64,000 bases of DNA, from NCBI GenBank assembly GCA_048013815.1, contig CM106585.1:12276001-12340000 (forward strand), in the 5' to 3' direction. Shown here one piece after another: positions 11,538 to 39,887 of the stretch. The stretch's first letter is position 1; every line of letters starts with the position of its first letter. The position numbers were made by a program, and so were the translations under genes. Below the pieces are notes generated by a model. That model saw only the letters and a list, made by a program, of their open reading frames with translations. It was not told the DNA's origin and made no database searches. The stretch is from Setoptus koraiensis (taxonomy: Eukaryota; Animalia; Arthropoda).

Positions 11538-12920
11538 TCAGTATAATATATCAGTATTGAAATCAAAATTAACATTAATATTATCAAGTAATTCTCTGCT
11601 ATGTTGTGATAATAAATCCGAGAAACGAGACTGCTGGCTGCCAAATGGATCCGGTGTCAGAGCTGGTGTTGGATTGTGAGCTCTAGTAATGTCATCACCG
11701 TCATCGTTATCCAATTGTAGATGGCTCGTTGTTGGAGCGGCAACAGTTGCGATGGTTTGTTGCTGTTGGTGATGTGGTTCGCCTACAGGATTGTTTATTG
11801 CCATCATCTCCAAATTAATAAGAGAAGTCACACCTAATACTGGATCAGTTTGATTTTTGATGTTGTTGTTAGTGTTGCTGCTGTTGCCGGTGACAGTGGT
11901 GCAATATGGCAACGGAGGAATTTTGAGTAATGACTTGTCGATGTCATAAAAATTGTCATCACAACAGTAACAGCCACTGCTACCACTGCTGCTAATAATA
12001 CTGCTGGTGGTGTTTTCTTGTTGATAAACTTGTTGGTAAGGTGGTTGGGGTCGTCGTTGTAGTTGATGTAGGTGAGTCTGTGGCATATGGGGATGGTCGT
12101 CGTGCAGTTGTTGATGGAGTTGTTGTGGTAGCTGTTGTTGTAGCTGCTGCTGTTGTTGATGCTGCTGTTGTTGATGCTGTAGTTGTAGTTGTTGTGGTTG
12201 CTGTTGTGGTTGTTGTGGTTGTTGTAGTTGTAGAGGGACGAGGGGCGTGCGGACAACGAAATCAATGTTGTCGAAAATGTCTTCGTGGTTGTCGTAGAGG
12301 CCGGGCTTGTTTGGTGGGGCGAGTGTTTTAATTAGGTAATAAATTCGTTGTCCGATGGCCATGAGCGATGCATCCTGATCGAAATAGATTTTGTCTCTGA
12401 GTCTGTGTAAGAAATCGTTGAGCAGTATAATTGTAGTCTCGAGTCTCCTCTTAAGTAGCGAATTTCTCTCCATTTCTTGTACCTGTTCCTCAATTAGCTG
12501 TTGATGTTGCTGTTTCTTCCTTTGGCGATATTTTTCCGCAGCGGCAGCGTTCGATCGCTTCTTGTCCGGCCGTTTGGTATTAGTTGGTATGGGTTGTTGA
12601 ACGAGCTGCCTGAGGTGCTGTTGTTGCGCACATTGTCGTTGTTGCTGGCTGAGCTGTTTCTCCGGCCGTTGTTGTGACTGCTGTTGTTGCTGTCGTTGTT
12701 GTTGCTGCTGCTGTTGTTGCTGTTGTTGTTGCTGTTGCTGCTGCTGTTGTTGCCGCGGTTGTTGTTGCTGCGGTTGCTGTTGTTGCTGATGACCTGGTTC
12801 CTGCTGGTTAGCTTGTTGCTGGTGCGGCTGCGATTGCATCATGACCACCCTGAATTTTGGTCGTCGGGGCTCCTGGCCGGTGGACGACGAACACTTGAGT
12901 CGTTTCATTTTGAGAATCAT
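11538..12920 (-). CDS. PolyQ-rich bZIP transcription factor, ATF4/ATF5-like basic region
   Basis: KKRSNAAAAEKYRQRKK followed by a zipper (LIEEQVQEMERNSLLKRRLETTIILLNDFL) resembles ATF4 NKTAATRYRQKKR. First ATG is at 12920 (the ORF-track start at 12929 is TTG). Intronless. Confidence 0.65.
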   Translation of the reverse strand: MILKMKRLKCSSSTGQEPRRPKFRVVMMQSQPHQQQANQQEPGHQQQQQPQQQQPRQQQQQQQQQQQQQQQQQQQRQQQQQSQQRPEKQLSQQQRQCAQQQHLRQLVQQPIPTNTKRPDKKRSNAAAAEKYRQRKKQQHQQLIEEQVQEMERNSLLKRRLETTIILLNDFLHRLRDKIYFDQDASLMAIGQRIYYLIKTLAPPNKPGLYDNHEDIFDNIDFVVRTPLVPLQLQQPQQPQQQPQQLQLQHQQQQHQQQQQLQQQLPQQLHQQLHDDHPHMPQTHLHQLQRRPQPPYQQVYQQENTTSSIISSSGSSGCYCCDDNFYDIDKSLLKIPPLPYCTTVTGNSSNTNNNIKNQTDPVLGVTSLINLEMMAINNPVGEPHHQQQQTIATVAAPTTSHLQLDNDDGDDITRAHNPTPALTPDPFGSQQSRFSDLLSQHSRELLDNINVNFDFNTDILY

Positions 12921-13710
12921 GCTGGCCAACTAATGATAATTGTGGGCCCAGCAGAAAAGTGAGATTAAATGTCGAGATGCGCTACAGGTTTGCGAGTTAT
13001 AAATGTGATGAGTTGTGGGTTGTGTGTATAGTGAGTATTGCAAAAATAATTGTCGTTACAAGTTGCGTTAGCGGATATTGTCGGCGCCGGCGTGAGTTGC
13101 GCTGATATTTAAACACACTCGATTTGCATGCAAGCCACAACTACAAACACTAATAGTGATAAACAAACTAGCGATACTGTATTATTATTGGCCACTGGCT
13201 TCCAGAATACGGAGGCTCTTCCATTGAATGGCCGTGTGCCCGCCAACACAAATCTTTGCAACAGTTTGTTAGATGATGATGATGATTGGCGTCAACTGGA
13301 TCGCATGCCGCACTTTGCAATGCGAGGCTCGCATCGCAGGGCTCGCATTGTAGGGCTCACAAGTCGCATTTTGTGACTTGTGAGCATAGTCAACGCGAGT
13401 TTCTCGTAGCCCAACGAGCATCACAAATAATAACTTATTACAAATAAGTAATACAAGTAGCAAGGCGCCACCTAAAGCCACGCTACAGTGTGCGCCCGGA
13501 TCAATACGCAGCAGCGACATTGTGCGGCCGACACACGCAAACAGGCCCGCGCGCCGCGCGTTGTGCGGGCCTGTCGTCTAGTTTGCCCATTTGTCTGCTT
13601 GTGTCGCCACAATCTCGCAATTGTCATCACACTCTACTCATAACTGTCACACAACTACAACTACACGGTGCAACTGTGCTGACCAACTGTATCGACACTG
13701 CACTCCAGTC

Positions 13711-13747: not shown

Positions 13748-14913
13748 CACTTGTCCAGACACTTGTGAGTCCAGACACTTTGTGACACAAAGTTTGTGTT
13801 GCAAACACTCAAGCGTCCAAATGTCACCCACTGCTTGCCACGTCCGCCTAAATGCCACTGAAAACAAGCGCCAGCCCGTCTTACAAGTTACCAACTGTTA
13901 GTGATAATCATACGACGAGCCCCGGTGCGGCCAAGGCACACTTAATCAACTGTAATCCCTTGTGACGCGGCCTAATTCAGCTCGATAATAACTTTTTCCT
14001 TTGTCCCCAATCCGGATGCTGGCTCACCAGTGACCAGTCGGCGACATGACGCCTCCGTTGAGCCAGCGCGACTTGCGCACTCATCGTGGGCTCACAACGC
14101 GCGTCGTCTAATCTAACATTTATTAACATTTACATTTGCTTTTAATTTGACTTGATTCCATTCCATTTGATTCTATTTGATTCAATCCGACACAATCACA
14201 GCAAGGGCCCAATATTGCCGCCAATCGGCACCAATCATCTACGGTGCTAACCACAAGTTCTAGTTTAGAACGGACAACACAACAAGTGCGCTTGTAAAAC
14301 ACTCTCTCACAGTGAGAGTGTTTTGAGAGTCTCACTGCCTCCGGTTGGCGCCTTCACTTTTTGAATATTCGCTCCCTGCGCTCAAGCAGCTGATTGTGTT
14401 CATATCCCAGACGTATGTTACGCATCCACTACATGGGGATTCATGCTGACTTTTTACAACTATCCTCTCAACATCATCTCAATTCACTGCTTTACTCATA
14501 GATCATTGGACCTACGTTGGACTAGACGCCTCACTATTACATGTCGGAACATTATTATCACTAATAGTACTAACATTATTGCTGCAACTGTTTGTTTACC
14601 TGTAAATCATTCCAAACTCGTCGTCGTCAATCGCTAATGTAGCAACATTATTATCCTTATTGGTATCGGACAACAACAACCAAAACAATAACATACTCAC
14701 TCACCACTGACACATGCCAACATAATAAAAGCAAACATCTGTGGATTATATCTAGCAAACCCTTACATAGGACAACAAAAACACTTTAAATCACCTAATT
14801 CACACTTGCGCTTTGAAGAAAATACCACCCGTATATCAACAGGGAATAAATCGAACCAACAACAAAGTCTCAATCGTCCCAAATCGTCTCATCTTGACCA
14901 CCACTCAACAGTA

Positions 14914-15678
14914 ATGCCTTCTCCTGATACAACAACTCCACCAAATGCCACCAACCCGGGTGAGCAAACTGGTGGTGGCCCCAGGGCAAGTGCCGCCGAT
15001 CCTAGGCATCAAGCGACCAATCGCTCTCTCACCGGCTGGCCTTCTGTCCTTGATCACATTCAACGCAACAAAATCGACACCGCGTTATGTGTCACCAGAC
15101 TGCTCACTGTCATTTTTACCTTAATGTATCTGCTAAATTATACATCATCATCTAACAGTCATTACCTTCGGGCCTTGTTAGCTACAGCGGCAACATCGGC
15201 ATTTAGATTACAGCAACGATTGCCCACCATTGAATTGTCATTGCAATTTTTCACTAGTCTCATGGCTGAGGATTCTGCTCACTATCTATTCTATTCATTT
15301 ATATTCTTTTGGGGACGTCCTGTTACCTTGGTTCTATTGCCAGTGGCTTTATTTGCTCTATTAAACAGCATTGTTTACATCATCACAATATTGGACAAAT
15401 TAGGATCAATGGATCACGTCAAGCATAGCTTATCTTACTTCGTTGAGAAATATCAACAGAGCATCTTACAGACAACAGCATTGTGTGAGGTTATGATAGC
15501 ACCTATTACTGTAATTGGTACATTGACCGGCGTTCTATACTTTTTCGCCCCTCTCTTCTATTATAGATTTCTCAAACTGAGATACAACTCAAGGAGAAAC
15601 GCTTACTCAAGGATGATAATATCTCAGTTAAAAAACACCATAGGGCAGTATGCCTCTCGTTATATGAACCGTCGTTAG
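14914..15678 (+). CDS. TMEM33: Transmembrane protein 33 (Kr-h2/TMEM33) homolog
   Basis: KIDTALCVTRLLT, RALLATAATSAFRLQQRLP, EDSAHYLFYS and YYRFLKLRYNSRRNAYSR match TMEM33 motifs. First ATG is at 14914. Intronless. Confidence 0.92.
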   Translation: MPSPDTTTPPNATNPGEQTGGGPRASAADPRHQATNRSLTGWPSVLDHIQRNKIDTALCVTRLLTVIFTLMYLLNYTSSSNSHYLRALLATAATSAFRLQQRLPTIELSLQFFTSLMAEDSAHYLFYSFIFFWGRPVTLVLLPVALFALLNSIVYIITILDKLGSMDHVKHSLSYFVEKYQQSILQTTALCEVMIAPITVIGTLTGVLYFFAPLFYYRFLKLRYNSRRNAYSRMIISQLKNTIGQYASRYMNRR

Positions 15679-16169: not shown

Positions 16170-17795
16170 TCATTGTTTCTCTTTATCGACTTCTGACTTC
16201 TTCTTACTTCCTGAGACAATTCCGTCGATTCTCAGTAGCAAAACTGCAGTTTCAATAGCTGTCTTGTAGGCTTGCATTTTTACTGCAAGAGGCTCCCAGA
16301 CGTTAAGTACTTTCATATCGACAAGTTTACCTGTCTCACCATTAATACCGAAAGTCTTGTTATCGGCTGCTGTTGAGAAGTGTGTCGCTCTTAATGCAGT
16401 CAATTGGCGTACAGTGTCGCCACCACAGTTTTGAATTAATGTCCTGGGTATGACTTCTAAAGCATGAGCTGCAGCTCTATAGGGGCCTTGAGTAACATCG
16501 TTGATTTTGTCTGCTTTCTCTGACATTGCTTTTCCTACTGCCATCTCTACGGCTCCACCTCCGGGTACGACAAGAGGCTCCAGCATGATATTTCTCGCGA
16601 CACACATGGCATCTTGTAGATTACGTTCTACTTCATTCAAGATGTCCTTGCTTGGTCCACGCAAGACAACTGTGCAAGCTCGGGGATTTTTACATTTAAC
16701 TATGTAAGAGAAGTATTCATCACCTATCTTCTTAACTTCAAAAAGTCCAGCTCCAGTTCCTACATCTTCCTCGCGTAGCTCCTCAACTCGGTTCACTATA
16801 GTTGCTCCACAACAGCGCGCAACACGCATATTTTCTGTTTTCTTCAACCTTCTCAAACAAGTGATGTTGTTCTTCATCAGGTAATGTTGAGCTAGATCAG
16901 ACACTCCTTTCTCGGTGATCAATAGATCAGGTTTAAATTCAGCGATTTTGGCGCATAGGTTTTGAATGTATTCTTCTTCAATTTGAAGAACACGCGTGAA
17001 ATCTTCCTCTCTTGTGAGTTCTACATCGGTCTGGCTCTCTCCTTTTTTGTATTCTAATCCGGAGTCCAATAATATAATACGTGGGTTCTCAATGCGACGG
17101 CTCATCTTGGGGTGGACAACATCCTTGTTGAACATGACACCATCTAAGACTTCACTGTCTTCAATTGTTGCACCTGGTATTTTTTCAATACGAGCATAAC
17201 GCTTTATATCGATCTCTTTGCGACCATGTTCATCAATGTAAACCGATTTGGTTGCTTTGATGGCAAGACGGCAAGCAAAGTCTTCCCATTGTCCAAGAAA
17301 TTTTGTTCCAAGGCAACTTTGCACAACCTCGATTAATTTTGCCTCGTTGTTTATGTCTACCGGTATGGCAACTTGGTCTTTCAAAATCAATAGCATATCC
17401 TCTAAGGCGTGACGATAAGCTTTAATTACTAGAGTTGGGTGAAGGCCCTGTTCAAGAAATTGTTGTGACGATGATAGTAGCTCTCCCGCCAATATTATGA
17501 CAGATGTTGTTCCATCTCCGACCTCTTCATCTTGGGTTCGGCTAATTTCTATCATGGATTTAGCTGCTGGATGTTGTACAGTAATTTCGCGCAATATGGC
17601 ATTACCGTCGTTGGTCAGCACTATGCCTCCCATGGGATTCATCAACATCTTCAACATGGATCTTGGTCCAAGGCATGTCCTAACGACATCGGCCACATTT
17701 CTGGCAGCTCTGATACATTCGAGTTGAACTTTCTTTCCCTCTTCTCGTTTAGATTGCAAAACAAGAATTTGTGGTTGTCCCTGCATAGAAAACAT
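16170..17795 (-). CDS. CCT3: T-complex protein 1 subunit gamma (CCT3)
   Basis: LGPRSMLKMLMNPMGGIVLTNDGNAILREI, GDGTTSV and EYKKGESQTDVEL; 541 aa; intronless. Confidence 0.98.
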   Translation of the reverse strand: MFSMQGQPQILVLQSKREEGKKVQLECIRAARNVADVVRTCLGPRSMLKMLMNPMGGIVLTNDGNAILREITVQHPAAKSMIEISRTQDEEVGDGTTSVIILAGELLSSSQQFLEQGLHPTLVIKAYRHALEDMLLILKDQVAIPVDINNEAKLIEVVQSCLGTKFLGQWEDFACRLAIKATKSVYIDEHGRKEIDIKRYARIEKIPGATIEDSEVLDGVMFNKDVVHPKMSRRIENPRIILLDSGLEYKKGESQTDVELTREEDFTRVLQIEEEYIQNLCAKIAEFKPDLLITEKGVSDLAQHYLMKNNITCLRRLKKTENMRVARCCGATIVNRVEELREEDVGTGAGLFEVKKIGDEYFSYIVKCKNPRACTVVLRGPSKDILNEVERNLQDAMCVARNIMLEPLVVPGGGAVEMAVGKAMSEKADKINDVTQGPYRAAAHALEVIPRTLIQNCGGDTVRQLTALRATHFSTAADNKTFGINGETGKLVDMKVLNVWEPLAVKMQAYKTAIETAVLLLRIDGIVSGSKKKSEVDKEKQ

Positions 17796-21019: not shown

Positions 21020-22180
21020 TTGTTGTCATCTTGGTTGTACCGTTTCAATATGATGTTAAGAATACTGTCGAACACACTAGTTCATCAACGCTGCCTACTC
21101 AGACTATCTGACTGCGTCAGAAGTTCTTCAGCGCTCAAGCCAGCCAGTTGGATAAAATTCAGTCCCTATGGCCAATCACCAAAGAGACATATGCATCGAT
21201 ATCAGCAGGACACCATAAGGCTCATGTACTGGAGGGGGAGGTCGTTTGATGCAGTTAAATTCAAAGACAGACTGCAATCCGAGTGGCTGACATGGAACTA
21301 CAAGTCTGAATTGTTTGCATTCTCAAGACGCTTGAATGAAAACTTGAGCGAAACAACACTTCGTACAATATTCACATTCAGATGCTATTTAGACGAACTA
21401 GAGAAACAACAGCAAGATCTGGGAATGAAGGCTGCCGAGTTAGAGTATAAATGTAACACAGACCTGATAGATCGCGGTGCGGAACTTATGGAATCATTCA
21501 TAAAATCGTATCTCCGCTTTACATTTGATCGAATGCCTGAAGAAGGTATTGAAGAAGTGTGCAACTATTTGGTATCACAAGACGTCCTTCAAGATATTGC
21601 AAGATGGATAGGCTGTTATGATATAATATTGTGTGCCGAATTACCGCCTTCCGAAGAAAAGATGGCAAAATCAGTCAAGGCATTAGTCGCTGGCATTGAA
21701 CTGGATTATGGTTTGGACAAAGCGAGAAACTTTGTCATAGATTTTATATTAACTTATATACACGATAAAGATATTTTCGATGATATCTGGAAGATCCCTG
21801 ACCCGGTGGGCATAGTCAGAATGATTTCGAGAAACGACAATTTGGAATATGAGCCAAGAATAATGTTTCACACGGGTATTAATACCATTGAATCTTGTTA
21901 TGTTGTCGGAATTTATGTAAATAAGAAGCTTATCGGCTACGGACCAGGAGAAACGTTGAAAATAGCCGAGGTGTCCGCCGCTCTGGACTGCTTGCAGAGG
22001 TTGTGGGGCCTGAAGGAATCCAGAAAGCCAATGATATTTGGTGAACAAGCATACAAGATTGATTACAATAAGTATTCATCAAGGCACATGTCCATGAATG
22101 ACTGGACACTGTCCACTCTAGATACCGATATCCCTACTGGGCCTGATGTTGAAGCCAAAGAAAGTGTGAGCTGTAAATAA
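21020..22180 (+). CDS. MRPL44: Mitochondrial ribosomal protein L44 (RNase III-like plus dsRBD-like)
   Basis: WNYKSELFAFSRRLNENLS and YVVGIYVNKKLIGYGPGETLKIAE motifs; basic N-terminal presequence. Start is either ATG 21050 or ATG 20969 plus a 45-nt intron (GTAAG...TAG 20972-21016). Confidence 0.9.
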   Translation: MLSSWLYRFNMMLRILSNTLVHQRCLLRLSDCVRSSSALKPASWIKFSPYGQSPKRHMHRYQQDTIRLMYWRGRSFDAVKFKDRLQSEWLTWNYKSELFAFSRRLNENLSETTLRTIFTFRCYLDELEKQQQDLGMKAAELEYKCNTDLIDRGAELMESFIKSYLRFTFDRMPEEGIEEVCNYLVSQDVLQDIARWIGCYDIILCAELPPSEEKMAKSVKALVAGIELDYGLDKARNFVIDFILTYIHDKDIFDDIWKIPDPVGIVRMISRNDNLEYEPRIMFHTGINTIESCYVVGIYVNKKLIGYGPGETLKIAEVSAALDCLQRLWGLKESRKPMIFGEQAYKIDYNKYSSRHMSMNDWTLSTLDTDIPTGPDVEAKESVSCK

Positions 22181-22352
22181 AAACGTAGCCTAGAGAATAC
22201 AATAGTAGTCGAACCCATCTGTGACCCGACACAAGGTTTATTAGAATGTGTTGTTAGTTCATTGTTTTTTTTTTCTGTTGAACGTTACTTCTCTCTCTCC
22301 GTTGTATCTATGTGCACATAAAACGGCTGGCCTGGCCGATCTTCAAGTGGAT

Positions 22353-22535
22353 TTATCTGGCGTCGAATACAATCAACCTCTTGGTTCGTTTCTTGTAGAG
22401 GATTCTGTAGCCGCAATCACGACATCTAATTTGATCCTTTGGTTTGATGTGATTCTCACAGTGGCACTCGGCACAAAAATAGACTGTGTGCGCCTTGTTG
22501 GTGGCCACATCGTCGGAGGTGTCCATAGAGTCCAT
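22353..22535 (-). CDS. POLR2K: RNA polymerase I/II/III shared subunit RPABC4 (RPB12)
   Basis: 60 aa: [41 protein letters not shown] zinc ribbon; ATG at 22535. Confidence 0.97.
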
Positions 22536-22562
22536 GATGATAATAAATTCAATCAGATATGT

Positions 22563-22759
22563 TGTTGGTGTATACGCTCTGTTCGCAATCTGAGCAGGAT
22601 TCACTTTGTGCCAGCATTATACTTCACTGTGCCATTTTAATAACCAACTGTGCAACTATATATACTAATGCACAGTGATCATATATACTTACTCGAACTT
22701 ATACTTACATTCACATATATTCAATAAAAACTAGCTACACGCTACATAAAACCACAAAA
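22563..22759 (+). repeat. 5' LTR
   Basis: TGTTGGTG...ACCACAAAA; TATATA tracts; AATAAA at 22723. Confidence 0.97.
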
Positions 22760-22770
22760 GGTTAACAGCC
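22760..22770 (+). other. Primer-binding site GGTTAACAGCC
   Basis: Immediately 3' of the LTR. Its reverse complement GGCTGTTAACC is the anticodon arm of eukaryotic tRNA-Asn(GTT) as recalled. Confidence 0.75.
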
Positions 22771-22843
22771 AAAATTTTGCGATTGAATATATAACGAAAA
22801 AAGTACATAGTCCCCACGCTAACCACCAACATTGGACACCAAC

Positions 22844-25800
22844 ATGCAAAACATGCAATTGGCCGTCCCGTCTACGTCACATGGGACTAGACCGACTCAT
22901 CTTATCCGCCTGAATGGAGATAATTACTCAACCTGGCGAATGGTTATGAAGAAGGCTCTCAGCAACCGCAAGTTAGCCAGCGTTGTCTACGATCCCGAAG
23001 ATCCACTTCTCTCAGCTGAAGAAAGATCCGTCAAGGATTCTGAGGCATGGGAATTGCTTATCACGACCATGGACCAAGCTACGATGGACAAGGTCGTAGT
23101 CTGTGAGACGGCCAGAGAAATCTGGGACCGTCTCAAGAACATTTTTGAACAAGAGGGTGACGCTAGTCTCACCAACAATTACATTCAATTTTTCACCATT
23201 ACGATGCATGAATCTGAAGAGGTATCAGATTATATTTCCAAGCTTGAAAAATTGGTCGACAAAATAACTCAACAAGGCGAGACTCTCAGTGACCGGCTAC
23301 AACAAGCAAATCTACTGAGAGGCCTCACGTCAGACTATGATGTCTTTCGCAAAGTCTGGAGTGGCACTGCGGAAAAATCATACAAAATACTTAAAGACCG
23401 ATTGATCCTAGAAGGTACTTCGAACAAAAACCAACAATCGCGTAATAAATCAGGATCAGCATTCTACTCGCGAGAGCAAGATAGGTCGCATGGCAAAGAT
23501 AGACGCCAAGATAATGATAAACGGAAAGAAGTTGTTCGATGCAAATTCTGCAATTATAGAGGCCATACAATTGAGGACTGTCGCAGAAAGAAAGCTCAGC
23601 AAGACAACAACCCTCCACAAAAGACCAACAATTCTCCAAATGCACAAAAGAGCAACCATCAACAATCATCTAATCCAAAGCCTAACGAGAGAGCGCAATC
23701 CCGCTCTAATAACAACTTCGCATTCATGGCCAAAGTTGGCGACCAGTATGCAGGTCCAGATCTGTGGTACGCAGATTCAGGTGCGTCGAAACATATGTGC
23801 AACAACAAAGCTATGTTCAGCACAATAACATACTTCGACACACCGATACAAATCACAATAGGCGATGCAACAACAATTAAGGCGTATGGTTCCGGTCCAG
23901 TAGACATTGAAAGTACGAGTGGTGGAGCAATTTACTCAGTTACACTGACTAATGTTTACTATGTGCCGGAAATTGCGGAAAACTTAATATCCATTTCAGC
24001 TACCACAAGCAAAGGAAAGGTGCGCGTAATATTCGATGAGGACCATGTCCTATTCTTTAGTAAGACAGAACAGCCTGTCCTCATTGCCAGAGGTAACAAA
24101 CTTCCCTCAGGTCTATATCTAATGGAAGCATATGCTCAGAGCGACAGGGCCCTCTTCATGAAGTTCAACCGAACCATCGACGAATGGCACTCCAGTTTGG
24201 CCCATATAAACAAGGCTAGAATCAACCGAGCTATCACAGGAAATTTGGTAGAAAAAGCATCGATCTTAGATAAACGAGAACAAGGTTGCTGCGAGTGTCC
24301 ACAAGGCAAAGGCACCCAGGTTTCTCACCCGGACTCACACCGAGAACTGGCTAAAGAGGTTGGAAATGTGGCACATATGGATCTGGTGGGAAAGACTATT
24401 CCCAGCTTAGGTGGTAGCCAATTTTTTCTTTTAATAACCGATGAGGCTAGTAATTATCGGGTCATTTATCCCATCAAGACAAAGGATCAGGTCCGCGACA
24501 TGCTTCGAGACTATCTTACTATGGTCCGAAACCAAACCGGCAACAGCGTCAAACATGTCTTTTCGGATAACGGTTCGGAATTTGTAAATCAATGGACCAA
24601 AGAGCTATTTGCTGTCGAACAAGTGTTACACCATACGAGTGCACCCAGAACGCCAGAGCAGAATGGACGAGCAGAACGTTCAAACAGAACGGTTATAGAA
24701 GCTACACGCACCATGCTATTATCAAGTGGTCTTCCGAAGGAGTTGTGGGCAGAAGCTGCAGTAGCAGCGGTCTACATTTTGAATCGTATATCGAAGGTCA
24801 GGGACGGGGATACAACACCGTTTGAAATGTGGTTTAGACGCAAGCCTCATATTGCTCACATTCACGTCTTCGGTCAGGAGATACAACTAGTTAATAAGGA
24901 GCGCCCTGAATCAAAATGGGCCTCTAGAACGACTCCTGCCTACCTAGTAGGTTATACTGAGAGAGAAAATACATATAGGTGCTTTATTCCAGGCAAAAGA
25001 GCAATCGCTGTGACTAGCGATGTAATATTCGAAAAACATCCTCCTAAAACTACATGTCATTGTCAAACTACATCTTCCATCGGCCCAACACCGGACTTTC
25101 TTATCATACCGGACAATAAACCAAGAGAGAATACAGCAAATAATCCTATTACTGATGATCCTGGCACAACCGAGAACTCAGAACTCAACGTAGCTCCAAG
25201 TCCTACTGGCAATTTTCAATCAACACCCCTGGTAACAGCAGACAATCGTTCAAGTGACCTTGGAAGAAAGTTACCCACATCGGTGCTATCAGATTACTTT
25301 AATGAACTTCTGAAACATGATGGTCAACATTCCGCAGTCAATCTAGAAGAGAAGGACGAATCAAAGAGTATAACTAGGCCAGAGATCAGTTTACTTACTG
25401 ATCACGAGGCAAACAATACATCAGGGCAAAATAACAATGTTAATACCGATAATACTGGTGCATCTACCTCCAATCAACAAGGTCATCCAGGACGTCTGTC
25501 TAGACTCCTCGGATTGTCGTCAAGTGCTAGAATAAACAATGCGATTGTTACTCCAAGCAGACAGGCAGAGGTTGACCATCAACCATTCAAAGATGGACGC
25601 CTATCTGACCTCAAGCTCACAAAGGGAGGTATGTCAGGAGTATTCAGCCTCATCGCACACATCGAGCCTAAAACATATGATCAGGCGCTGAAGAGTAAGG
25701 AATGCGATAAGTGGCAAACAGCTATTGACGATGAACGGAAATCTTTGGAAGAGAACCAGACCTGGACTGTCGTGAAACTTCCCAAAGACGGCCACGCTCT

Positions 25801-28800
25801 CTCTTCTAGGTGGGTATTTACCAAAAAGATGTTATCGAATGGCGAAGTTGATCGCTATAAAGCACGCCTCGTAGTAAGAGGGTTCACGCAGCGACCTGGC
25901 GTGGACTTTCATGAAACTTTTGCTCCAGTGGTTCATCTCGAGTCGATTAGAATCTTGTTTGCTTTGATCACGCACTATCGGATGGAAATTCTACAATTTG
26001 ATATTGCCACCGCCTTCCTACAAGGAGACTTGGATGAAGATATTTACATTGCTCCACCAAAAGGGATCGACTGCCCAAATAATCACGTGCTCAAGCTCAA
26101 CAAATCAATCTATGGGCTGAAACAAGCTCCTAGATGCTGGAAGAGTAGCTTTGATCGCATCCTATCCAGACTCAACTTCGAGCCCATGATATCTGATCCC
26201 TGTCTTTTTGTAGGAAATATTCTGTCGCATAAGGTACTACTGGCTATCTATGTCGATGATGGTTTAGCTGCTTCTAAGTCACGAGAGGCGCTAGACCATC
26301 TCCTAAAACTACTGTCCACCGAGCTCAAAGTGCGCGAGGTCAAGTCAAATAAATTCGTTGGGATTGAAATCAAGAGATCGGATGATTATTCTGAATTAGT
26401 ACTGCATCAGCAAGCATACATTTATAAAATGCTAGATGAGTTTAATATGATAAGCTGCAAGCCAGATAAGACACCCATTACGGACACAAAGGCATTGCAA
26501 ACACAAGATGCAAATGATAAAGTCACTACTGCACCATATCGCGAGCTTATAGGTAGCCTATTATACGCTGCCTGCCTTACCAGGCCAGATATAAGCTTTT
26601 CCGTAAGTTTCTTATCACGGTTTAGTGAAGCTCCACTCGATAAACACTGGGCTGCTGCCAAGCGCATCTTAAGATACCTCAAAGGCACCGCCCAAATGGG
26701 GATAAAATTCACACACTCAACCCAACTCAACCTGGAGTGCTTTACCGATGCTGATTGGGGAGGTGACTTGACAAGTAGAAAGTCGACCTCTGGAATGATC
26801 TGCTTTCTATCTAACGGTCCAATCAGTTTTAAGTCGAAAAAACAAACAGTGGTGACACAGTCGACTACGGAGGCTGAATATCTTGCCGCCAATCTAGGAG
26901 TAAGAGAAATACTCGGTACAAGAAACATTCTAGATGAACTAGATATACAACCAAACACTACATCACTTAACCTAGACAATCAATCAGCAATACGACTAAT
27001 CAAGAATAGTGAATACCATAATGACACCAAGCATATAAGTATAAAAGCACATTTCATACGAGACCATTATCAACAAGGAATGTTCTCACTTCAATACGTC
27101 TCATCATCCGACCAGAAGGCGGATATATTAACAAAAGCATTAGCACCCAAGACACATACTGCCATGTTAGGCAAACTAAACATGACCCTTATTGCAGTGG
27201 TATGCATCATTACAACACTAATTGCACCAATGGATGGACATGTGTTTGCTGTAGATGATCCTATCATCTGGATGAAGGAGAACGTACACTACATCAGTGG
27301 CCAAATTGACGAACATATAAGAGTTGAACTCATTGATCAATGTCAATATGTATTCAAGAACCTCACCGGATTGAACAATTTGGACAATAAACTAATGCAA
27401 GCCTGCTCGCAAAGATTTAAGCTGGATGTTATAGAAAACTGGAAAAAGATCGCCAGCGACAATACACGAATTGCCAGAGATGGTGGCCTCTCGTTGGCCA
27501 CTGTTGTGGCAGTTACCAGTATATTTACTAGTATTGCAGCAACAATCAAAGTAAAAGACATGGAAAGGGAGGAACGTATTCGCAATGAATTGGTGACGCA
27601 GATGAACGACAATGTCGCCACTATCCAACGTAAGTTGCTACTCTCCAATGAGCGCATATCGACAAAATTAGACAAACTAGAGGACAGAATTGAAAAATTA
27701 GGTCATATAGTTGCAGCGCAACCCCAACTGCAAGACGCCTTGCATCAGGCACTCATAGCTATCCACGAATATAAACTACGCCTACTCCAACTGAAAAGGC
27801 AATTGACAATAAACAGTGAAGTGCCAACTATCCTATTAGAGATTTTCAATCTTACGCACCTCACCAACGAGGCTACCCTGCGCCACTCTAAGATACACAA
27901 GATAGTTATGCGAGACAATCATCTACATATCCAATTAACCTTGCCGAAGATAGATCATCGCGTTACAATCTACAAAGCAAAACCTTTCTTTTACACAGCA
28001 ATCCATGACGACAAGGTATGTACTTTCAGGTATCGCGGACCTGAGTACATGATGCATAATAAAAGTTCAGGTTGTATGCATCCAGTCTCAAATGATGAGA
28101 TTATTAACAGCGCAATTGTTGGTGAAGACTGCACTCATCCACGGTCTTTAAACATAAAAGATTTATTTGTGCCAGAGGACTGTCAAAAGATAACGAAAGA
28201 AACCTTCATGAAGCAGAAAGTCCAAATTAAGCCATATGGAGTTCAGGTCTTTGTCAACTGCCAAGGACATAATATCACTATAGGTAATCTTAACCAAAGG
28301 TGCCCTAATCATGTCTTTACAGTGAATGAAGGGGTAAAATTCATGGTTGGAGATACGCGCTATCAATTCGAGAAGTCCAACACCGACGTAGCACTGAATT
28401 TGCATGACGTATCCGCCCGCATTAATCTCCAGTTAGGCACGTCAAAGCCTATCTTCACTGCACTGGACACAGAAGACATCCAAGACCTTGAAAAAGAGGG
28501 TGCCCAATTAAGGAAAGCTCAACTGAAGCTAAAATTACTAACCAACTCTACAAGCTCTAGTTCCTTCTTTAACTTTGATTTAGGTAGTTTATACAACATA
28601 GGTAGCACCACACACTGGTTGATCACGGTTATTGGATCATACTTGGGTATGCTTGTAGGAGTGTATATCCTATACTTGTTGATCAAGGATAAGTGGAATG
28701 TAAAGCTATCGACAACCATTTTGGCAATAATTGCAATCCTACCACTTGCCATGGCAACGGATCAACAATCACAATTCCTCACTGTCACCCAAACGGCGAC

Positions 28801-29368
28801 CGAGTCGACCCGACAAATTCATCAGCTACAAAATGCAATGCTGGAAAACAAGTGTAACTTGTGGTCGCTCAATGAGAATACTGACTGGTGGCAAAGAGGT
28901 GCAGGGTATTACCCAGTCAGCATAGCCTGTGCGCTGGCCCGCTATAAAATCGAGTGTCCATGCTCTGTTGAAACAGAAATAATTCCCGTCCTACCTCGAT
29001 ATGAAATTCGCTTAATGAGGAACTTCACAGTTCCTCCTACCTGTGCACGCAATCCGACTCAAGAGTTTTCATCCCAGCTTAGACTCTATGAAACTCTAGT
29101 TGAATATCTGTGCATCTCAGCTAGACAGGAGCCAGATGACGCATGGCCAAAGCGAGCTCATGGACAATTGGTAGCATCTGGATGTATGGTCGCAAAAATG
29201 GCATATAATTGCCACTGCCCTGGCAACCATAAAAACATCTACAATGATGTGATCGCCACTACTCTAGAAGCCTTAAGACTTAGAGGCCCAAAACCGGCCA
29301 CCTGCAAAGGGCCGGAACCAGCTCCTGAAAAGTCAAATTCTGTAGTTGATCACTTGTTCACTGCTTGA
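22844..29368 (+). CDS. Single Gag-Pol-Env polyprotein (about 2174 aa from the first ATG)
   Basis: Copia gag; CCHC knuckle CKFCNYRGHTIEDC (23540-23581); protease WYADSGAS (D at 23774); HHCC pre-integrase; integrase D(24380)..D(24566)-x35-E(24674); RT YVDD (26249); RNase H TDADWGG...ADILTKAL (26744-27142); then an env-like region with no stop. Confidence 0.97.
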   Translation: MQNMQLAVPSTSHGTRPTHLIRLNGDNYSTWRMVMKKALSNRKLASVVYDPEDPLLSAEERSVKDSEAWELLITTMDQATMDKVVVCETAREIWDRLKNIFEQEGDASLTNNYIQFFTITMHESEEVSDYISKLEKLVDKITQQGETLSDRLQQANLLRGLTSDYDVFRKVWSGTAEKSYKILKDRLILEGTSNKNQQSRNKSGSAFYSREQDRSHGKDRRQDNDKRKEVVRCKFCNYRGHTIEDCRRKKAQQDNNPPQKTNNSPNAQKSNHQQSSNPKPNERAQSRSNNNFAFMAKVGDQYAGPDLWYADSGASKHMCNNKAMFSTITYFDTPIQITIGDATTIKAYGSGPVDIESTSGGAIYSVTLTNVYYVPEIAENLISISATTSKGKVRVIFDEDHVLFFSKTEQPVLIARGNKLPSGLYLMEAYAQSDRALFMKFNRTIDEWHSSLAHINKARINRAITGNLVEKASILDKREQGCCECPQGKGTQVSHPDSHRELAKEVGNVAHMDLVGKTIPSLGGSQFFLLITDEASNYRVIYPIKTKDQVRDMLRDYLTMVRNQTGNSVKHVFSDNGSEFVNQWTKELFAVEQVLHHTSAPRTPEQNGRAERSNRTVIEATRTMLLSSGLPKELWAEAAVAAVYILNRISKVRDGDTTPFEMWFRRKPHIAHIHVFGQEIQLVNKERPESKWASRTTPAYLVGYTERENTYRCFIPGKRAIAVTSDVIFEKHPPKTTCHCQTTSSIGPTPDFLIIPDNKPRENTANNPITDDPGTTENSELNVAPSPTGNFQSTPLVTADNRSSDLGRKLPTSVLSDYFNELLKHDGQHSAVNLEEKDESKSITRPEISLLTDHEANNTSGQNNNVNTDNTGASTSNQQGHPGRLSRLLGLSSSARINNAIVTPSRQAEVDHQPFKDGRLSDLKLTKGGMSGVFSLIAHIEPKTYDQALKSKECDKWQTAIDDERKSLEENQTWTVVKLPKDGHALSSRWVFTKKMLSNGEVDRYKARLVVRGFTQRPGVDFHETFAPVVHLESIRILFALITHYRMEILQFDIATAFLQGDLDEDIYIAPPKGIDCPNNHVLKLNKSIYGLKQAPRCWKSSFDRILSRLNFEPMISDPCLFVGNILSHKVLLAIYVDDGLAASKSREALDHLLKLLSTELKVREVKSNKFVGIEIKRSDDYSELVLHQQAYIYKMLDEFNMISCKPDKTPITDTKALQTQDANDKVTTAPYRELIGSLLYAACLTRPDISFSVSFLSRFSEAPLDKHWAAAKRILRYLKGTAQMGIKFTHSTQLNLECFTDADWGGDLTSRKSTSGMICFLSNGPISFKSKKQTVVTQSTTEAEYLAANLGVREILGTRNILDELDIQPNTTSLNLDNQSAIRLIKNSEYHNDTKHISIKAHFIRDHYQQGMFSLQYVSSSDQKADILTKALAPKTHTAMLGKLNMTLIAVVCIITTLIAPMDGHVFAVDDPIIWMKENVHYISGQIDEHIRVELIDQCQYVFKNLTGLNNLDNKLMQACSQRFKLDVIENWKKIASDNTRIARDGGLSLATVVAVTSIFTSIAATIKVKDMEREERIRNELVTQMNDNVATIQRKLLLSNERISTKLDKLEDRIEKLGHIVAAQPQLQDALHQALIAIHEYKLRLLQLKRQLTINSEVPTILLEIFNLTHLTNEATLRHSKIHKIVMRDNHLHIQLTLPKIDHRVTIYKAKPFFYTAIHDDKVCTFRYRGPEYMMHNKSSGCMHPVSNDEIINSAIVGEDCTHPRSLNIKDLFVPEDCQKITKETFMKQKVQIKPYGVQVFVNCQGHNITIGNLNQRCPNHVFTVNEGVKFMVGDTRYQFEKSNTDVALNLHDVSARINLQLGTSKPIFTALDTEDIQDLEKEGAQLRKAQLKLKLLTNSTSSSSFFNFDLGSLYNIGSTTHWLITVIGSYLGMLVGVYILYLLIKDKWNVKLSTTILAIIAILPLAMATDQQSQFLTVTQTATESTRQIHQLQNAMLENKCNLWSLNENTDWWQRGAGYYPVSIACALARYKIECPCSVETEIIPVLPRYEIRLMRNFTVPPTCARNPTQEFSSQLRLYETLVEYLCISARQEPDDAWPKRAHGQLVASGCMVAKMAYNCHCPGNHKNIYNDVIATTLEALRLRGPKPATCKGPEPAPEKSNSVVDHLFTA
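27182..29368 (+). CDS. Env-like class I fusion glycoprotein region plus post-TM Cys-repeat domain
   Basis: Signal MTLIAVVCIITTLIAPMDG; RIAR|DGGLSLATVVAVTSIFTSIAATI (27467-27547); heptad repeats; 8 ectodomain Cys; sequons NLT, NLT, NKS, NIT, NST; TM 28616-28684; second hydrophobic segment 28706-28756. Confidence 0.85.
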   Translation: MTLIAVVCIITTLIAPMDGHVFAVDDPIIWMKENVHYISGQIDEHIRVELIDQCQYVFKNLTGLNNLDNKLMQACSQRFKLDVIENWKKIASDNTRIARDGGLSLATVVAVTSIFTSIAATIKVKDMEREERIRNELVTQMNDNVATIQRKLLLSNERISTKLDKLEDRIEKLGHIVAAQPQLQDALHQALIAIHEYKLRLLQLKRQLTINSEVPTILLEIFNLTHLTNEATLRHSKIHKIVMRDNHLHIQLTLPKIDHRVTIYKAKPFFYTAIHDDKVCTFRYRGPEYMMHNKSSGCMHPVSNDEIINSAIVGEDCTHPRSLNIKDLFVPEDCQKITKETFMKQKVQIKPYGVQVFVNCQGHNITIGNLNQRCPNHVFTVNEGVKFMVGDTRYQFEKSNTDVALNLHDVSARINLQLGTSKPIFTALDTEDIQDLEKEGAQLRKAQLKLKLLTNSTSSSSFFNFDLGSLYNIGSTTHWLITVIGSYLGMLVGVYILYLLIKDKWNVKLSTTILAIIAILPLAMATDQQSQFLTVTQTATESTRQIHQLQNAMLENKCNLWSLNENTDWWQRGAGYYPVSIACALARYKIECPCSVETEIIPVLPRYEIRLMRNFTVPPTCARNPTQEFSSQLRLYETLVEYLCISARQEPDDAWPKRAHGQLVASGCMVAKMAYNCHCPGNHKNIYNDVIATTLEALRLRGPKPATCKGPEPAPEKSNSVVDHLFTA

Positions 29369-29377
29369 CCGTTCTCA

Positions 29378-29390
29378 GAGCGAGGGGGAG
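29378..29390 (+). other. Polypurine tract GAGCGAGGGGGAG
   Basis: Directly abuts the 3' LTR. Confidence 0.9.
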
Positions 29391-29587
29391 TGTTGGTGTA
29401 TACGCTCTGTTCGCAATCTGAGCAGGATTCACTTTGTGCCAGCATTATACTTCACTGTGCCATTTTAATAACCAACTGTGCAACTATATATACTAATGCA
29501 CAGTGATCATATATACTTACTTGAACTTATACTTACATTCACATATATTCAATAAAAACTAGCTACACGCTACATAAAACCACAAAA
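29391..29587 (+). repeat. 3' LTR
   Basis: Identical to the 5' LTR except one C>T at a CpG (ACTCGAAC vs ACTTGAAC). Confidence 0.97.
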
Positions 29588-29941
29588 TATGTTGCCTGAA
29601 TATTGATGTTACATTCAATACAAGATATTCATTGACAATATACCGATCGATAGAGCTGTGTGGTGAAAGTGCTATGGGAGCACGTTGCTGATCAATCTAA
29701 ATTCAATTCTCAAGTCGGATCATGCGGTGAGCGCCCGGTAAAATGTGCGCTGTGCCACTCCCCCTGCTCGCAGTGCCCGTTGGACAGTTGTTGCTGCGAG
29801 CATAAGGGCTGTTTTTCCCTCCTTTCGGTCCCTGTTGTGAGAGCGAACGCTCTTTCGTTGCTAGATGGACATGCACCTGAACTCTTTGTGAGAACAAACT
29901 GGAACGGCCGCATCAACAACAACAACAGCATCAACAACAAC

Positions 29942-30739
29942 TTCAGGAATTGTACTTGAGGAAAAACAAGGTGGAAAGTATAGCCGAGATTGCCCACTTA
30001 CAAAATCTGCCCAATCTTAAAAATCTATGGTTCGATGAGAACCCTTGCGTGGCTAACACTTACAATTATAGAAAAGTTGTTCTAAGGGCTCTACCAAATC
30101 TAAAAGTTCTTGACAATGTACCTGTAACTGGCGAAGAATTAAGAGAAATCGAAGAACTGGGTGATGAAATCTATGAAGAGATTTACAGACCAGACGCTTC
30201 AGTTGTTCGTGGTGGTGATGCTAGCGCACAAGAAATCGATTCTTATGATGATGGTAGATATGAAAATGATACAACCAATTACGACCAGGATAATAACATT
30301 AATGCCATTTCACACCAATCCAATGATTCCGGTAGTGATAGCAGTCAATCTAGCTCCACTATACCAACAACAAACAACTATGTTGCACAGACAAACTTTT
30401 GTCACAACACTAATAATAACTCATCTTCGGCTACATTGCCCAATGATATTTCTAGATTGAATATATCAACAACACCCAGTAATAAGAGCCAGTCTAGAAA
30501 TGTAACTAGTCATTCCAATAACAATCTAAGCGTTTCAAGCATTTGCCAGCAAGGTTGGTCACAACAAAATGTCAACAATAACCAAACAACAAATAGCAAC
30601 AATTCTGCCAACAGCATCCATCTTCCAAAAGGAGGCAAAAATCGCAATGCCAATATTTTGTCAGCCGTTTTATGTTTGATCAAAGAATTAGACTATGTTA
30701 GTTGCGAAGTAGTTCAAACAGCCTTACATTGCCGAATTG
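29942..30739 (+). pseudogene. 5'-deleted duplicate of CFAP410/C21orf2 exon 2 (copy of 33580-34377)
   Basis: 798 bp near-identical (one substitution seen, KVL vs KIL); lacks the start exon; stop codon replaced by GPCR sequence. Confidence 0.8.
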
Positions 30740-37298: not shown

Positions 37299-39887
37299 AT
37301 GGTGCCCGCTTGCTCCATTGCCCGCGTAATAACGGCCATATCGCTGGCCTGTGCATGCATTGTTACGACGGGCACTAGCTCAAGCAGCGACCCTGGGGCC
37401 CAGTCGTCGAGTCGTCACATTTTAAGCGCAGTAAATCACGCTGCAACAACCAATGCAACAACTAATGCAACAAGTGGTCGCCTTGCTGCAACAATGATAT
37501 CGGCCCACAACCAAACTACAATGGCCAACGTGACCATTCGAACCATCAAGCGGACCACAAAAACACCGTCAACAGTTTCGGAGTCAGTTCCGGGACAGAC
37601 TCACAAGCAAGCCGGCCCATACATGAGCCGACAATCGATTGCGGCAGCTCTCACAGCGCCAACAAACGCCACCGCCAATGAAACCAAAGAACAACGCCAG
37701 ACCGTGCACAGGGCCTCACAATACGCGCACCACAGGCAACAGATTAAACAGCACCGTGCAACCACCGCCAGACCTCATTTGCGCCCATTTGAACATTTGT
37801 TTCCACTTGATCATCTGCCTCTGATGCCCAACACTCCGCCGGTGTTTATGGTCTCGCGCGAGCTAATTGTCGCGAGGGACGATCCAATCGGCACCAGGGT
37901 GACAACAATCAAAACCAGAGACGATGATCATGATCGCATAGACTACTCGCTACAAGAGTCTTTAGTTCAGGATGGATCGAAATATTTTCACATCAATCGC
38001 AGGACAGGTGAACTAATTTTGAGTGGTAAATTTCCACAGCCAGAACACAATAGCGACAACATTGATTACTATATCACAGTAGTGGCCGACGATGGCCATT
38101 TCCCTGCCAAAATGGATTTCCTTGTGCGCGTTGTCAACAACGACAATTCTACTAGCCAACAGGATCAACTATCTCACACACAATCCATTCCATTGATGCC
38201 ACCGCCCAAGATTATCGGCAATATGACACGAGAATATGTCTCTAGACTGCCCGGTTATGATTCAACACAACCACATAGTATACCCTCGTATGTTAATCCA
38301 CCCATGACACTGCCATGGAATTTCAGGCATCCTCATGACAGTACAAGCTTGCTTACCCGAGACGATGTCAAGGAAGAACCTTTGTCAAAATCCGATTCAA
38401 TGGACACCAACATTCCAGGCCCCATTCCCTCACAATTCAGAGATAGCAATGAGGTTGATGTCAATCCAAGCCGGAGCGAAATTATAGTACCCAATCAAAT
38501 GACGAACGTGCTGTCAGATAGCTCGTCTCGTGATGGAGCCTCATTTCCTGAAGCTGGCCAACAAACTACTCATTCGAATATTAATTCTAATTTATTCGGA
38601 ATCATATTGCTTTCGTCGGTTATTACCTGCCTAATTGTATCAGCTTTTAGAAAGATGAAACAATTAGAAGACAAAGAAAATCATGATCCCAACGTAAAAT
38701 GTGCAGTCATGATCGCGGACGAGACACCAGAGAGGATCATTTCCCCTGTAAGCTCTTGGGAATATGACTGTATTGAGACGGACGAATATTCTGAGAGATC
38801 CAGCCAAGACTTGCAACCCGCTGTAATCAATCCTACTAGAGAAGCAACTCCATCTCACAAGTTTTCTAGCTTAAGAACTGAGAAAGTACCCTCGGCACAA
38901 GATGATTTGCTTTTGGAAGGACTGAGTCAAGAAGCGGAAAAAGAAAGTAAGAGATGGGATTTTCCTCGCCATAAATTGATTTTCAAAGATATGCTAGGTG
39001 AAGGTGAATTCGGCCAAGTATGGAGATGTTTAATTGAAGAGGAAGAAGGCACTAAGAGGCAAGTTGCTGTTAAAACATTAAAAAGAGGATTGGGAAAGAA
39101 CGAACGAGAGAATCTCCTGGCAGAGATTGAAATAATGAAACTACTGGATAGACATCCTTATGTCGTTCAGATGCTAGGCTGCTGTATGGAAGCGAACGAA
39201 CCCATATATCTGATAATGGAACTTATTCAAAAAGGGAAATTGAGTTCTTATTTGAGAAAAAGCCGCCAGGACAGATTGTACAACAACTTGCACGGTACAA
39301 GTGGTAGGTTGACAGCAAAAGACTTGATCAAATTCTCATACCATATCGCAAAAGGGATGGAGTATGTTTCATCTCAGGGTATCATACATAGAGACTTGGC
39401 TGCTAGGAATATTTTGGTTACATCAAATAAGATTTGTAAAGTAGCCGATTTTGGCTTTGCGAGAAAGGTCGATGTCGAATGTATCTATGAGAGAAAATCG
39501 GACGACAGAGTCCCCGTCCGCTGGATGGCTCCAGAATCATTGGATAATAGGTACACGACTAAATCAGACGTGTACTCTTTTGGTGTTCTAATGTGGGAAA
39601 TAGTAACCCTGGGGGCGTCGCCCTTTGAAGACCTATCAGCATGCGAAGTCATGCAGAAAGTGCGTCAGGGGGAGAGATTGCCAAGGCCGGACCATTGTAA
39701 GAGGGAATTGTACAATATTATGACCAAATGTTGGATGCATGATCCAGAAGATAGACCAAGTTTCAGCATGTTAGCACTGATATTAAACAAACTTCTAATT
39801 AGTGAGAATGAGTACATTGAGCTGGAACAATATCCTGATCACAGTTATTACAATATACTGACTGATCTTTCTGGAGAGAAGCTGTAG
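37299..39887 (+). CDS. Cad96Ca: Cadherin-domain receptor tyrosine kinase Cad96Ca/Stitcher (RET-like)
   Basis: Signal peptide; single cadherin repeat (PPVF...DDPIGTRV...DDDHD.IDYS); [21 protein letters not shown]; kinase [28 protein letters not shown]; C-terminal [12 protein letters not shown]; intronless. Confidence 0.92.

Follow-up and report, generated by a model that had tools for sequence, protein, structure and literature searches.

A young Ty1/copia retroelement from an eriophyoid mite whose single open reading frame joins Gag-Pol to a predicted F-type envelope glycoprotein

Envelope (env) genes of animal long terminal repeat (LTR) retroelements are documented for Ty3/gypsy elements, the errantiviruses, and for BEL/Pao elements, whereas for Ty1/copia there are only the doubtful env-like open reading frames (ORFs) of plant Sireviruses (PMC13524379, PMC5408684). 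A survey of env-carrying retrotransposons (eLife 2026, PMC13524379) deals with Ty3/gypsy only, classifies all of its elements as such and mentions Ty1/copia-like env in passing, and a 2025 survey of metazoan Copia diversity leaves envelope genes unmentioned. In a full-text literature search, with most subscription journals and Repbase Reports outside its coverage, no paper was found that describes an animal copia element with an F-type env. Here we analyze a 7,025-bp element located at positions 22563-29587 of a 64,000-nt stretch (the window) of contig CM106585.1 from Setoptus koraiensis. We regard it as probable that this is an intact, young Ty1/copia element which encodes Gag-Pol in one frame with an F-type Env and a cysteine-rich module, and as highly probable that its core identity, a copia backbone joined to an F-type Env, holds throughout the lineage to which it belongs. 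Env-bearing LTR retroelements with an F-type fusogen are known; what appears to be new here is the combination of such a fusogen with a copia backbone, encoded in frame with Gag-Pol and followed by an additional orphan module.

An envelope region within a copia element

The two LTRs differ by a single mismatch (196/197 identical in a direct-repeat search of the window) and the element is flanked on both sides by the same 5-bp target-site duplication (TSD), TATGT. The insertion, with its nearly identical LTRs and intact TSD, is recent. Neither a second copy nor a solo LTR of the element was found in the 64,000-nt window, and no tRNA gene was found there. Base composition is even along the whole element. 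The stop codon of its only long ORF (29366-29368) lies just 22 nt from the 3′ LTR, which places all of the ORF-encoded parts inside the element.

The Pfam match to RVT_2, the copia-type reverse transcriptase (RT) domain, spans positions 1-243 of the 244-position model and corresponds to polyprotein residues 971-1213. It is preceded by Pol_BBD at residues 308-391, in the protease (PR) region, and by gag_pre-integrs, rve and SH3_retrovirus at residues 423-733, in the integrase (IN), and it is followed by the ribonuclease H (RNase H; RH) motifs at residues ~1300-1433. The HH-CC and D,D..E residues of the integrase are present in the translation. A Ty3/gypsy Pol would be recognized by RVT_1 and the order PR-RT-RH-IN; we found RVT_2 instead, with IN ahead of RT, and the presence of copia-type domains only is likewise at odds with a BEL/Pao Pol. 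A misassigned gypsy backbone was considered and rejected on the basis of RVT_2 and the other copia-type domains. Judged by RVT_2, the copia-type Gag and the order PR-IN-RT-RH, the backbone is that of a Ty1/copia element.

Past the terminal RNase H motif ADILTKAL (27119-27142) there is neither a stop codon nor a change of frame, and 741 codons follow, 728 of them counted from the Met at 27182. An earlier note on this DNA, made without database searches, had reported LTRs 196/197 identical with an intact TSD, the copia domain order, a complete set of catalytic motifs, and some 730 codons running on past ADILTKAL inside the element. Our analysis agrees on each of these points: the repeat search and the reading of the flanks returned the same LTR and TSD values, the Pfam domains fall in the order given, the DSGAS, D,D..E, YVDD and RNase H motifs can all be read in the translation, and the additional codons precede the polypurine tract (PPT) and the 3′ LTR.

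The 728-residue product of this extension (the Env piece) was modeled as a monomer with AlphaFold2 from an alignment of 47 natural relatives. The model, with a mean predicted local distance difference test score (pLDDT) of 78 and 300 residues at 90 or above, has a long helix behind the fusion peptide, a beta-rich body, a membrane-proximal helix and a transmembrane (TM) helix. A Foldseek comparison with the PDB returned 230 matches at E≤1e-3, and the best 50 of these 230 were all F proteins of paramyxoviruses or pneumoviruses (Langya, human parainfluenza virus 3, Hendra, Nipah, respiratory syncytial virus and others), each with a probability of 1.00 and with ~410-530 aligned columns. Among the predicted viral structures of BFVD, the best matches were arthropod mononegavirus glycoproteins, baculovirus F (Ld130) and paramyxovirus F0. 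Paramyxovirus F chains also ranked first when a profile of the Env family was compared with the PDB sequences (Langya F, E=4.5e-7), the match running through the fusion peptide and the first heptad-repeat helix (HRA). In the Env alignment, eight ectodomain columns contain cysteine in 65 to 67 of the 67 sequences, and [RK]xxR followed by a hydrophobic 22-mer occupies the aligned place in 54 of 67 relatives. Predicted fold and profile-to-sequence match thus identify the extra region as an envelope fusion glycoprotein of class I and F type, in support of the earlier designation of the region as an envelope glycoprotein.

Several observations weigh against this reading of the element. The TM-scores of the Env model to solved F structures are low (0.17-0.38). 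A monomer in a single conformation was here compared with trimers in the pre- and post-fusion states, to which we attribute these values; they remain a caveat, and the predicted fold match therefore rests on Foldseek probability and alignment length. No Pfam family, Fusion_gly (PF00523) and Baculo_F included, matched the Env of the element at E≤1, and only one of 47 Env relatives gave a match to Fusion_gly, a weak one. Finally, although the LTRs begin with TG at the repeat boundary, they end in CACAAAA (22753-22759 and 29581-29587) and not in the canonical CA.

The relatives bear directly on whether Pol and Env belong together. An exhaustive HMMER search with the Env piece over 1.84 billion representative proteins (E≤1e-3) yielded 288 representative Env relatives, all of them from Sequence Read Archive (SRA) assemblies. 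Exact look-ups of the window polyprotein and of the host CCT-gamma showed that the collection does not contain the genome of the window itself. For the 150 listed of the 288, the backbone was scored by its match to the Gag-Pol of the element or to a gypsy Pol and confirmed with Pfam; 32 of these carry a copia backbone and 13 a gypsy backbone in the same ORF as Env, the latter with RVT_1, RT_RNaseH and Integrase_H2C2. Thirty-eight relatives, cluster representatives less than 50% identical to one another, run in frame from RH into Env as the window element does, and these sequences come from at least five sequencing runs. Among the 15 relatives of at least 1,800 aa, 14 are complete Gag-Pol-Env single ORFs and one (P0001) is Pol-Env. 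The earlier note had itself named as a possible refutation that the env region might be an assembly chimera or a host gene inserted in this copy only. An artificial continuity of this kind, whether from misassembly or from a host or viral gene landing in one copy, is contradicted by the 38 other representatives that cross the same junction, by the PPT and 3′ LTR directly behind env and by the even base composition over the element. We consider it extremely improbable and rejected it, since the RH-Env fusion is common to all of these representatives.

The same F-type Env was also observed in one ORF with a Ty3/gypsy Pol in 13 representatives, including P0028, P0045, P0064, P0077, P0116, P0119, P0124, P0136 and P0144, indicating that the one-frame Pol-Env layout is not peculiar to copia.

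The last ~220 codons require a separate description. The earlier note had not set them apart from the rest of the extension; behind a second hydrophobic segment they encode a distinct, conserved cysteine-rich module. TM anchor, basic loop, hydrophobic segment and cysteine-rich domain are kept as a unit in 26 relatives, all of which are members, or fragments of members, of the Env clade that contains the window element (clade A, below), and the cysteines of the tail are mostly conserved among them. Folded alone, the tail gave a mostly helical AlphaFold2 model (pLDDT 73.6; predicted template modeling score 0.71) that had no Foldseek match in the PDB at E≤1e-3, and the tail sequence had no Pfam match. 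The basic loop, the A-x-A end of the hydrophobic segment, the cysteines and an N-glycosylation sequon suggest that the tail faces the lumen or the outside and may be released by signal peptidase. Its position behind a TM anchor would also suit a cytoplasmic part of Env that, for example, contacts the capsid, and because its fold has no known match the side of the membrane is predicted from these sequence features. We nevertheless consider a cytoplasmic tail unlikely: a second hydrophobic segment ending in small residues (A-M-A) follows the short, strongly basic loop and is kept in relatives, and ten largely conserved cysteines together with a sequon fit an oxidising compartment. For a lumenal or extracellular module, our best guess is a role as an attachment protein or partner subunit of F; the orphan module is a candidate for a new kind of protein that partners an F-type fusogen.

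Age and constraint of the envelope lineage

A neighbour-joining tree of the F part of Env (67 sequences, 439 columns, 100 bootstraps) contained three copia-linked clades: clade A, which includes the window element (bootstrap 100), clade B (82) and clade C (90). An RT-RH tree of 19 sequences, built from env-bearing relatives only, recovered the same three groups with the same membership (100, 80 and 100 for A, B and C). RT-RH identity to the window element was 49-69% within clade A and 36-42% to clades B and C; between the three copia clades it was 36-52%. The agreement of the Pol and Env clades at such low RT-RH identities indicates that Env has long travelled with copia Pol and was not captured by this element. 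The earlier note had proposed an independent env capture by an arthropod copia element. An arthropod copia with env is indeed present, but the capture cannot be assigned to this element because, as the matching trees suggest, Env is old in the lineage. P0028, whose backbone is of the gypsy type, is one of the two sequences that form the sister group of Env clade A (bootstrap 99); the other gypsy-linked Envs group loosely elsewhere in a tree whose deep nodes are weak. Judging from these placements, an exchange of env between superfamilies is likely.

The closest relative, P0001/L001, is 58% identical to the window element in Env and 69% in RT-RH; its gag and pol-env were called as two ORFs. Together with L002, L009 and L010 it makes up four clade A lineages from a single run (SRR33593474), with Envs 33-58% identical to that of the window, and the source of this run thus holds a diversified population of these elements. 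In L002, L009 and L010, pol is broken into several ORFs and env is one ORF. No terminal repeats were found in L001-L003, and a single-protein scan of JGI metagenomes gave pattern matches and no relative.

Side observations were made on several of the relatives. P0103 (1130 aa, copia) and P0068 (1578 aa, gypsy) pass from Gag, PR and part of IN directly into Env without RT, showing that deletion derivatives which keep gag and env exist on both backbones. In the P0007 contig (SRR18067306), a 151-aa ORF encoding a chromodomain (7150-7605) lies ~500 bp downstream of a 2,187-aa copia Gag-Pol-Env ORF. Arrays of short degenerate tandem repeats are found downstream of env in two clade C relatives (L004:3001-3452, units of ~20 nt; L005:6983-7132, units of ~64 nt) and may belong to a 3′ untranslated region or an LTR.

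Comparison with L001 gave non-synonymous divergences (pN) of 0.23 for the F ectodomain, 0.34 for the tail, 0.21 for RT-RH and 0.36 for PR-IN; synonymous sites were saturated. The synonymous differences themselves were 0.81-0.94, above the saturation value of 0.75 in most segments; this excess suggests that the two hosts or lineages differ in base or codon composition. By these sequence comparisons, Env is as constrained as Pol. They bear on the proposal that Env is a passenger, decaying or co-opted, that contributes nothing to the life cycle of the element, a proposal that can draw on the cleavage site RIAR, which is a minimal R-x-x-R and not R-x-[KR]-R, and on the purging of repeats by eriophyoid genomes (bioRxiv 10.64898/2026.08.24.746826). 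We consider it very unlikely. In a copy with one LTR mismatch in 197 positions, the 728-codon region is intact, its non-synonymous divergence from L001 is as low as that of RT-RH at saturated synonymous sites, the cysteines, cleavage site, fusion peptide and TM segment are kept in dozens of relatives, and env lies within the LTRs, close up against the 3′ one. That the predicted Env of this particular copy is a working fusogen we give an even chance.

Taken together, these results incline us, by a little, towards an old, diverse and so far undescribed animal lineage of env-bearing Ty1/copia elements (‘copia retroviruses’) that encode Gag-Pol-Env in one frame and have kept an F-type fusogen through deep divergence, with one clade adding a structurally novel cysteine-rich glycoprotein module. 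If this is true, all three animal LTR-retroelement superfamilies have evolved or exchanged the same F-type envelope, the copia lineage filling the place of the missing third. One fusogen family occurs on copia as well as on gypsy elements, and one copia clade has a gypsy-linked Env for its sister; env modules therefore appear either to move from one superfamily to another or to be much more ancient than has been supposed.

Two possible routes to the envelope protein

Encoding Gag-Pol-Env in one frame raises the question of how a cytosolic polyprotein and a secretory glycoprotein come from a single ORF. A strong hydrophobic segment is located 10-50 aa past the end of RH in 35 of the 39 junction-spanning sequences, and continuity of frame from RH to Env is kept across all clades, at RT-RH identities as low as 36-42%. 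In one possible route, the full-length RNA would be translated into one Gag-Pol-Env polyprotein, and the hydrophobic segment behind RNase H would serve as an internal signal sequence directing Env into the endoplasmic reticulum (ER). Host signal peptidase and, on the cytosolic side, the protease of the element would then part Env from Pol, a furin-like protease would prime F at RIAR, and a second signal-peptidase cut behind A-M-A might release or expose the cysteine-rich module, which could then serve as a partner glycoprotein in, for instance, attachment. Env, like its errantivirus counterpart, would allow capsids to exit the cell within a membrane and then to fuse with a second cell. Flavivirus and alphavirus polyproteins likewise begin with a cytosolic part that is followed by glycoproteins entering the ER by internal signals and freed by signal peptidase. 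The likeness is one of mechanism, without sequence or evolutionary relation, and the processing of the polyprotein of this element is predicted. On the sequence evidence, we favour the polyprotein route only tentatively, at slightly less than an even chance.

The alternative is that the same element makes Env from a spliced subgenomic mRNA, as retroviruses and gypsy do. Splicing could join the gag start and N-terminal codons to an acceptor within the end of RNase H, or the leader to the Met at 27182 (or 27164). Two lines of evidence speak for this route. The first is the Met that stands just ahead of the hydrophobic segment in 26 of the 35 sequences, against ~36% expected by chance, and that all clade A members keep before their signal-like segment, which fits independent initiation. 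The second is P0109 (L004:333-2765, SRR29524840), an 810-aa ORF that reads ~110 N-terminal Gag residues, the last ~35 RNase H residues and a full Env in one frame. Its residues 34-146 correspond to the first 111 of P0085 and its residues 148-804 to P0085 1322-1945, with sharp match boundaries in the full-length P0085 and agreeing ones in eight other relatives. P0109 thus has the appearance of a spliced env mRNA, and the use of an acceptor within RH would be enough to account for env staying in frame with pol. A crude scan, too weak to decide the matter, also located two pyrimidine-rich AG acceptor sites upstream of 27182. Drosophila copia, which is also a single-ORF element, uses splicing to adjust the ratios of its products.

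However, P0109 may just as well be a genomic copy that has undergone an internal deletion and keeps the 5′ end of gag together with env; its contig goes on for 1.7 kb past env, and it belongs to clade C, not to the clade of the window element. A crude scan with a generic donor consensus found no good GT donor where the Gag of the window element corresponds to the P0109 junction. Moreover, nine of the 35 relatives lack the Met, and a separate env start codon can therefore not be the general rule. Splicing is in our view only slightly less likely than the polyprotein route.

Genomic setting and known systems

The chaperonin subunit CCT-gamma encoded in the window shares 82% identity with its counterpart in Aceria tosichella and 81% with the one in Fragariocoptes setiger, compared with 70-72% for Tetranychus and Dinothrombium, which are other mites. 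By this measure the host is an eriophyoid mite (Eriophyoidea). An eriophyoid-like CCT-gamma was also noticed in SRR29525000, an accession near that of L004 (SRR29524840), which gives a hint on the hosts of the relatives. A literature search on five of the runs that yielded relatives (SRR33593474, SRR18067306, SRR29547005, SRR29524840 and SRR26321829) turned up no paper.

The positions of the element’s parts and of selected host genes are collected in Table 1. The neighbouring genes are of ordinary metazoan kinds and encode TMEM33, CCT-gamma, a CPAP-like protein, mL44, a leucine-rich-repeat/seven-transmembrane (LRR/7TM) receptor, a tyrosine kinase, an LDLa protein, GNAT, CSRNP and a CLIP-trypsin. 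The element starts ~380 bp past the mL44 ORF and ends ~360 bp ahead of the LRR/7TM receptor ORF. The flanking ORFs (22248-22562 and 29660-29956) have no Pfam domain and so give no sign of an interrupted host exon; the long window ORFs at 595-1674, 11538-12929, 41798-42865 and 43087-45471 also had no Pfam match. The copia element was the only transposable element seen in the window. Closely packed, intron-free host ORFs are typical of the streamlined genomes of eriophyoids, which are ~32 Mb in size with few introns and few repeats (PMC7738191; bioRxiv 10.64898/2026.08.24.746826). That a young and complete copy sits in a genome among the smallest and poorest in repeats of any animal suggests that such elements may persist by re-entry, a route that a streamlined genome would find hard to purge.

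Table 1. Features of the element and host genes in the window
Feature	Position	Strand	Basis or remark
5′ target-site duplication	22558-22562		TATGT, identical to the 5 bases after the 3′ LTR
5′ LTR, 197 bp	22563-22759	+	TG start; TATA-like and AATAAA strings; direct repeat family D1
Leader and presumed primer-binding region, right behind the LTR	22760-22843	+	assigned by position
Single ORF (Gag-PR-IN-RT-RH-Env-tail), ATG to TGA, 2,174 codons	22844-29368	+	frame open from 22832
Gag	22844-23764	+	capsid domain 23009-23434, Pfam Retrotran_gag_2 E=2.9e-25
CCHC zinc knuckle of Gag, C-x2-C-x4-H-x4-C	23540-23581	+	motif position
Aspartic protease	23765-24016	+	DSGAS at 23774; Pfam Pol_BBD E=2.3e-24
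Integrase: zinc-binding pre-integrase, catalytic core, SH3-like	24110-25042	+	Pfam gag_pre-integrs, rve, SH3_retrovirus
Reverse transcriptase, copia type	25754-26482	+	YVDD at 26249; Pfam RVT_2 E=1e-63
RNase H, TDADWGG to ADILTKAL	26744-27142	+	motifs; weak RVT_3 match; aligns with the RH ends of 38 relatives
Met and hydrophobic signal-like segment	27182-27241	+	hydropathy; begins 13 codons past the RNase H end
Predicted F-type (class I) fusion glycoprotein ectodomain	27242-28615	+	AlphaFold2 model, Foldseek, profile match, conserved Cys
Furin-like basic site RIAR	27467-27478	+	sequence motif
Fusion-peptide-like hydrophobic segment	27482-27553	+	hydropathy; low pLDDT, as expected for such a segment
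HRA-like heptad-repeat helix, 64 residues	27611-27802	+	DSSP helix 144-207 of the Env piece
HRB-like membrane-proximal helix	28469-28543	+	DSSP helix 430-454 of the Env piece
Env transmembrane anchor	28616-28687	+	hydropathy 2.16; helix in model
Basic loop KDKWNVK (7 residues) and second hydrophobic segment (28706-28756) ending A-M-A	28688-28756	+	signal-peptidase-like end
Cys-rich, mostly helical tail, ~200 aa, 10 Cys, 1 N-glycosylation sequon	28757-29365	+	conserved in relatives
Polypurine tract	29377-29390	+	read from sequence; adjoins the 3′ LTR
3′ LTR, 197 nt	29391-29587	+	direct-repeat partner of the 5′ LTR
3′ target-site duplication, TATGT	29588-29592		read from sequence
TMEM33	14806-15678		host gene, long intron-free ORF
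CCT-gamma	16170-17795		host gene, long intron-free ORF
mL44	21020-22180		host gene, long intron-free ORF
Tyrosine kinase	37299-39887		host gene, long intron-free ORF
CLIP-trypsin	58555-59547		host gene, long intron-free ORF

Several described systems share part of this organization. Plant Sireviruses such as SIRE1 also combine a copia-type backbone with an env-like region downstream of pol, but they are plant-specific, and their env-like region is a separate ORF of unclear envelope nature (PMC5408684, PMC3599292); by contrast, the element described here has an animal host, a predicted F-type fold and an env in frame with pol. The BEL/Pao element Roo of Drosophila and the TelKA clade of bdelloid rotifers, the latter with a paramyxovirus-like F, resemble it as non-gypsy or otherwise unusual LTR lineages with an F-type Env that has RxxR and a fusion peptide (PMC13524379; PMC5408684), and differ from it in having a Pol of another superfamily, env as a separate ORF3 and no reported tail module. 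Baculovirus F (Ld130), the glycoproteins of arthropod mononegaviruses (lispi-, arli- and chu-like) and the F proteins of paramyxoviruses and pneumoviruses have the same predicted fold and are the best structural matches, joined by a weak profile-level match in the fusion peptide and HRA. Unlike the Env of the element, to which their sequence identity is 9-16%, these proteins are encoded by stand-alone genes of exogenous DNA or negative-strand RNA viruses.

The errantiviruses, including the ‘ancient errantiviruses’ (PMC13524379), likewise are invertebrate LTR elements with an F-type class I Env that has a signal, a furin-like site, a fusion peptide and a TM segment, and in them, as here, Env and Pol diverge together. 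Relatives of the Env described here occur on Ty3/gypsy Pol (P0028, P0045, P0077 and others), and one of them is sister to Env clade A. Unlike errantiviruses, the element has a Ty1/copia backbone, an Env in one frame with Gag-Pol and the additional cysteine-rich module. By its defining sequence features it is a member of Ty1/copia (Pseudoviridae), and not an errantivirus (Metaviridae), a Sirevirus or a BEL/Pao element; by analogy, it may nonetheless work as an errantivirus does and form enveloped, transmissible particles.

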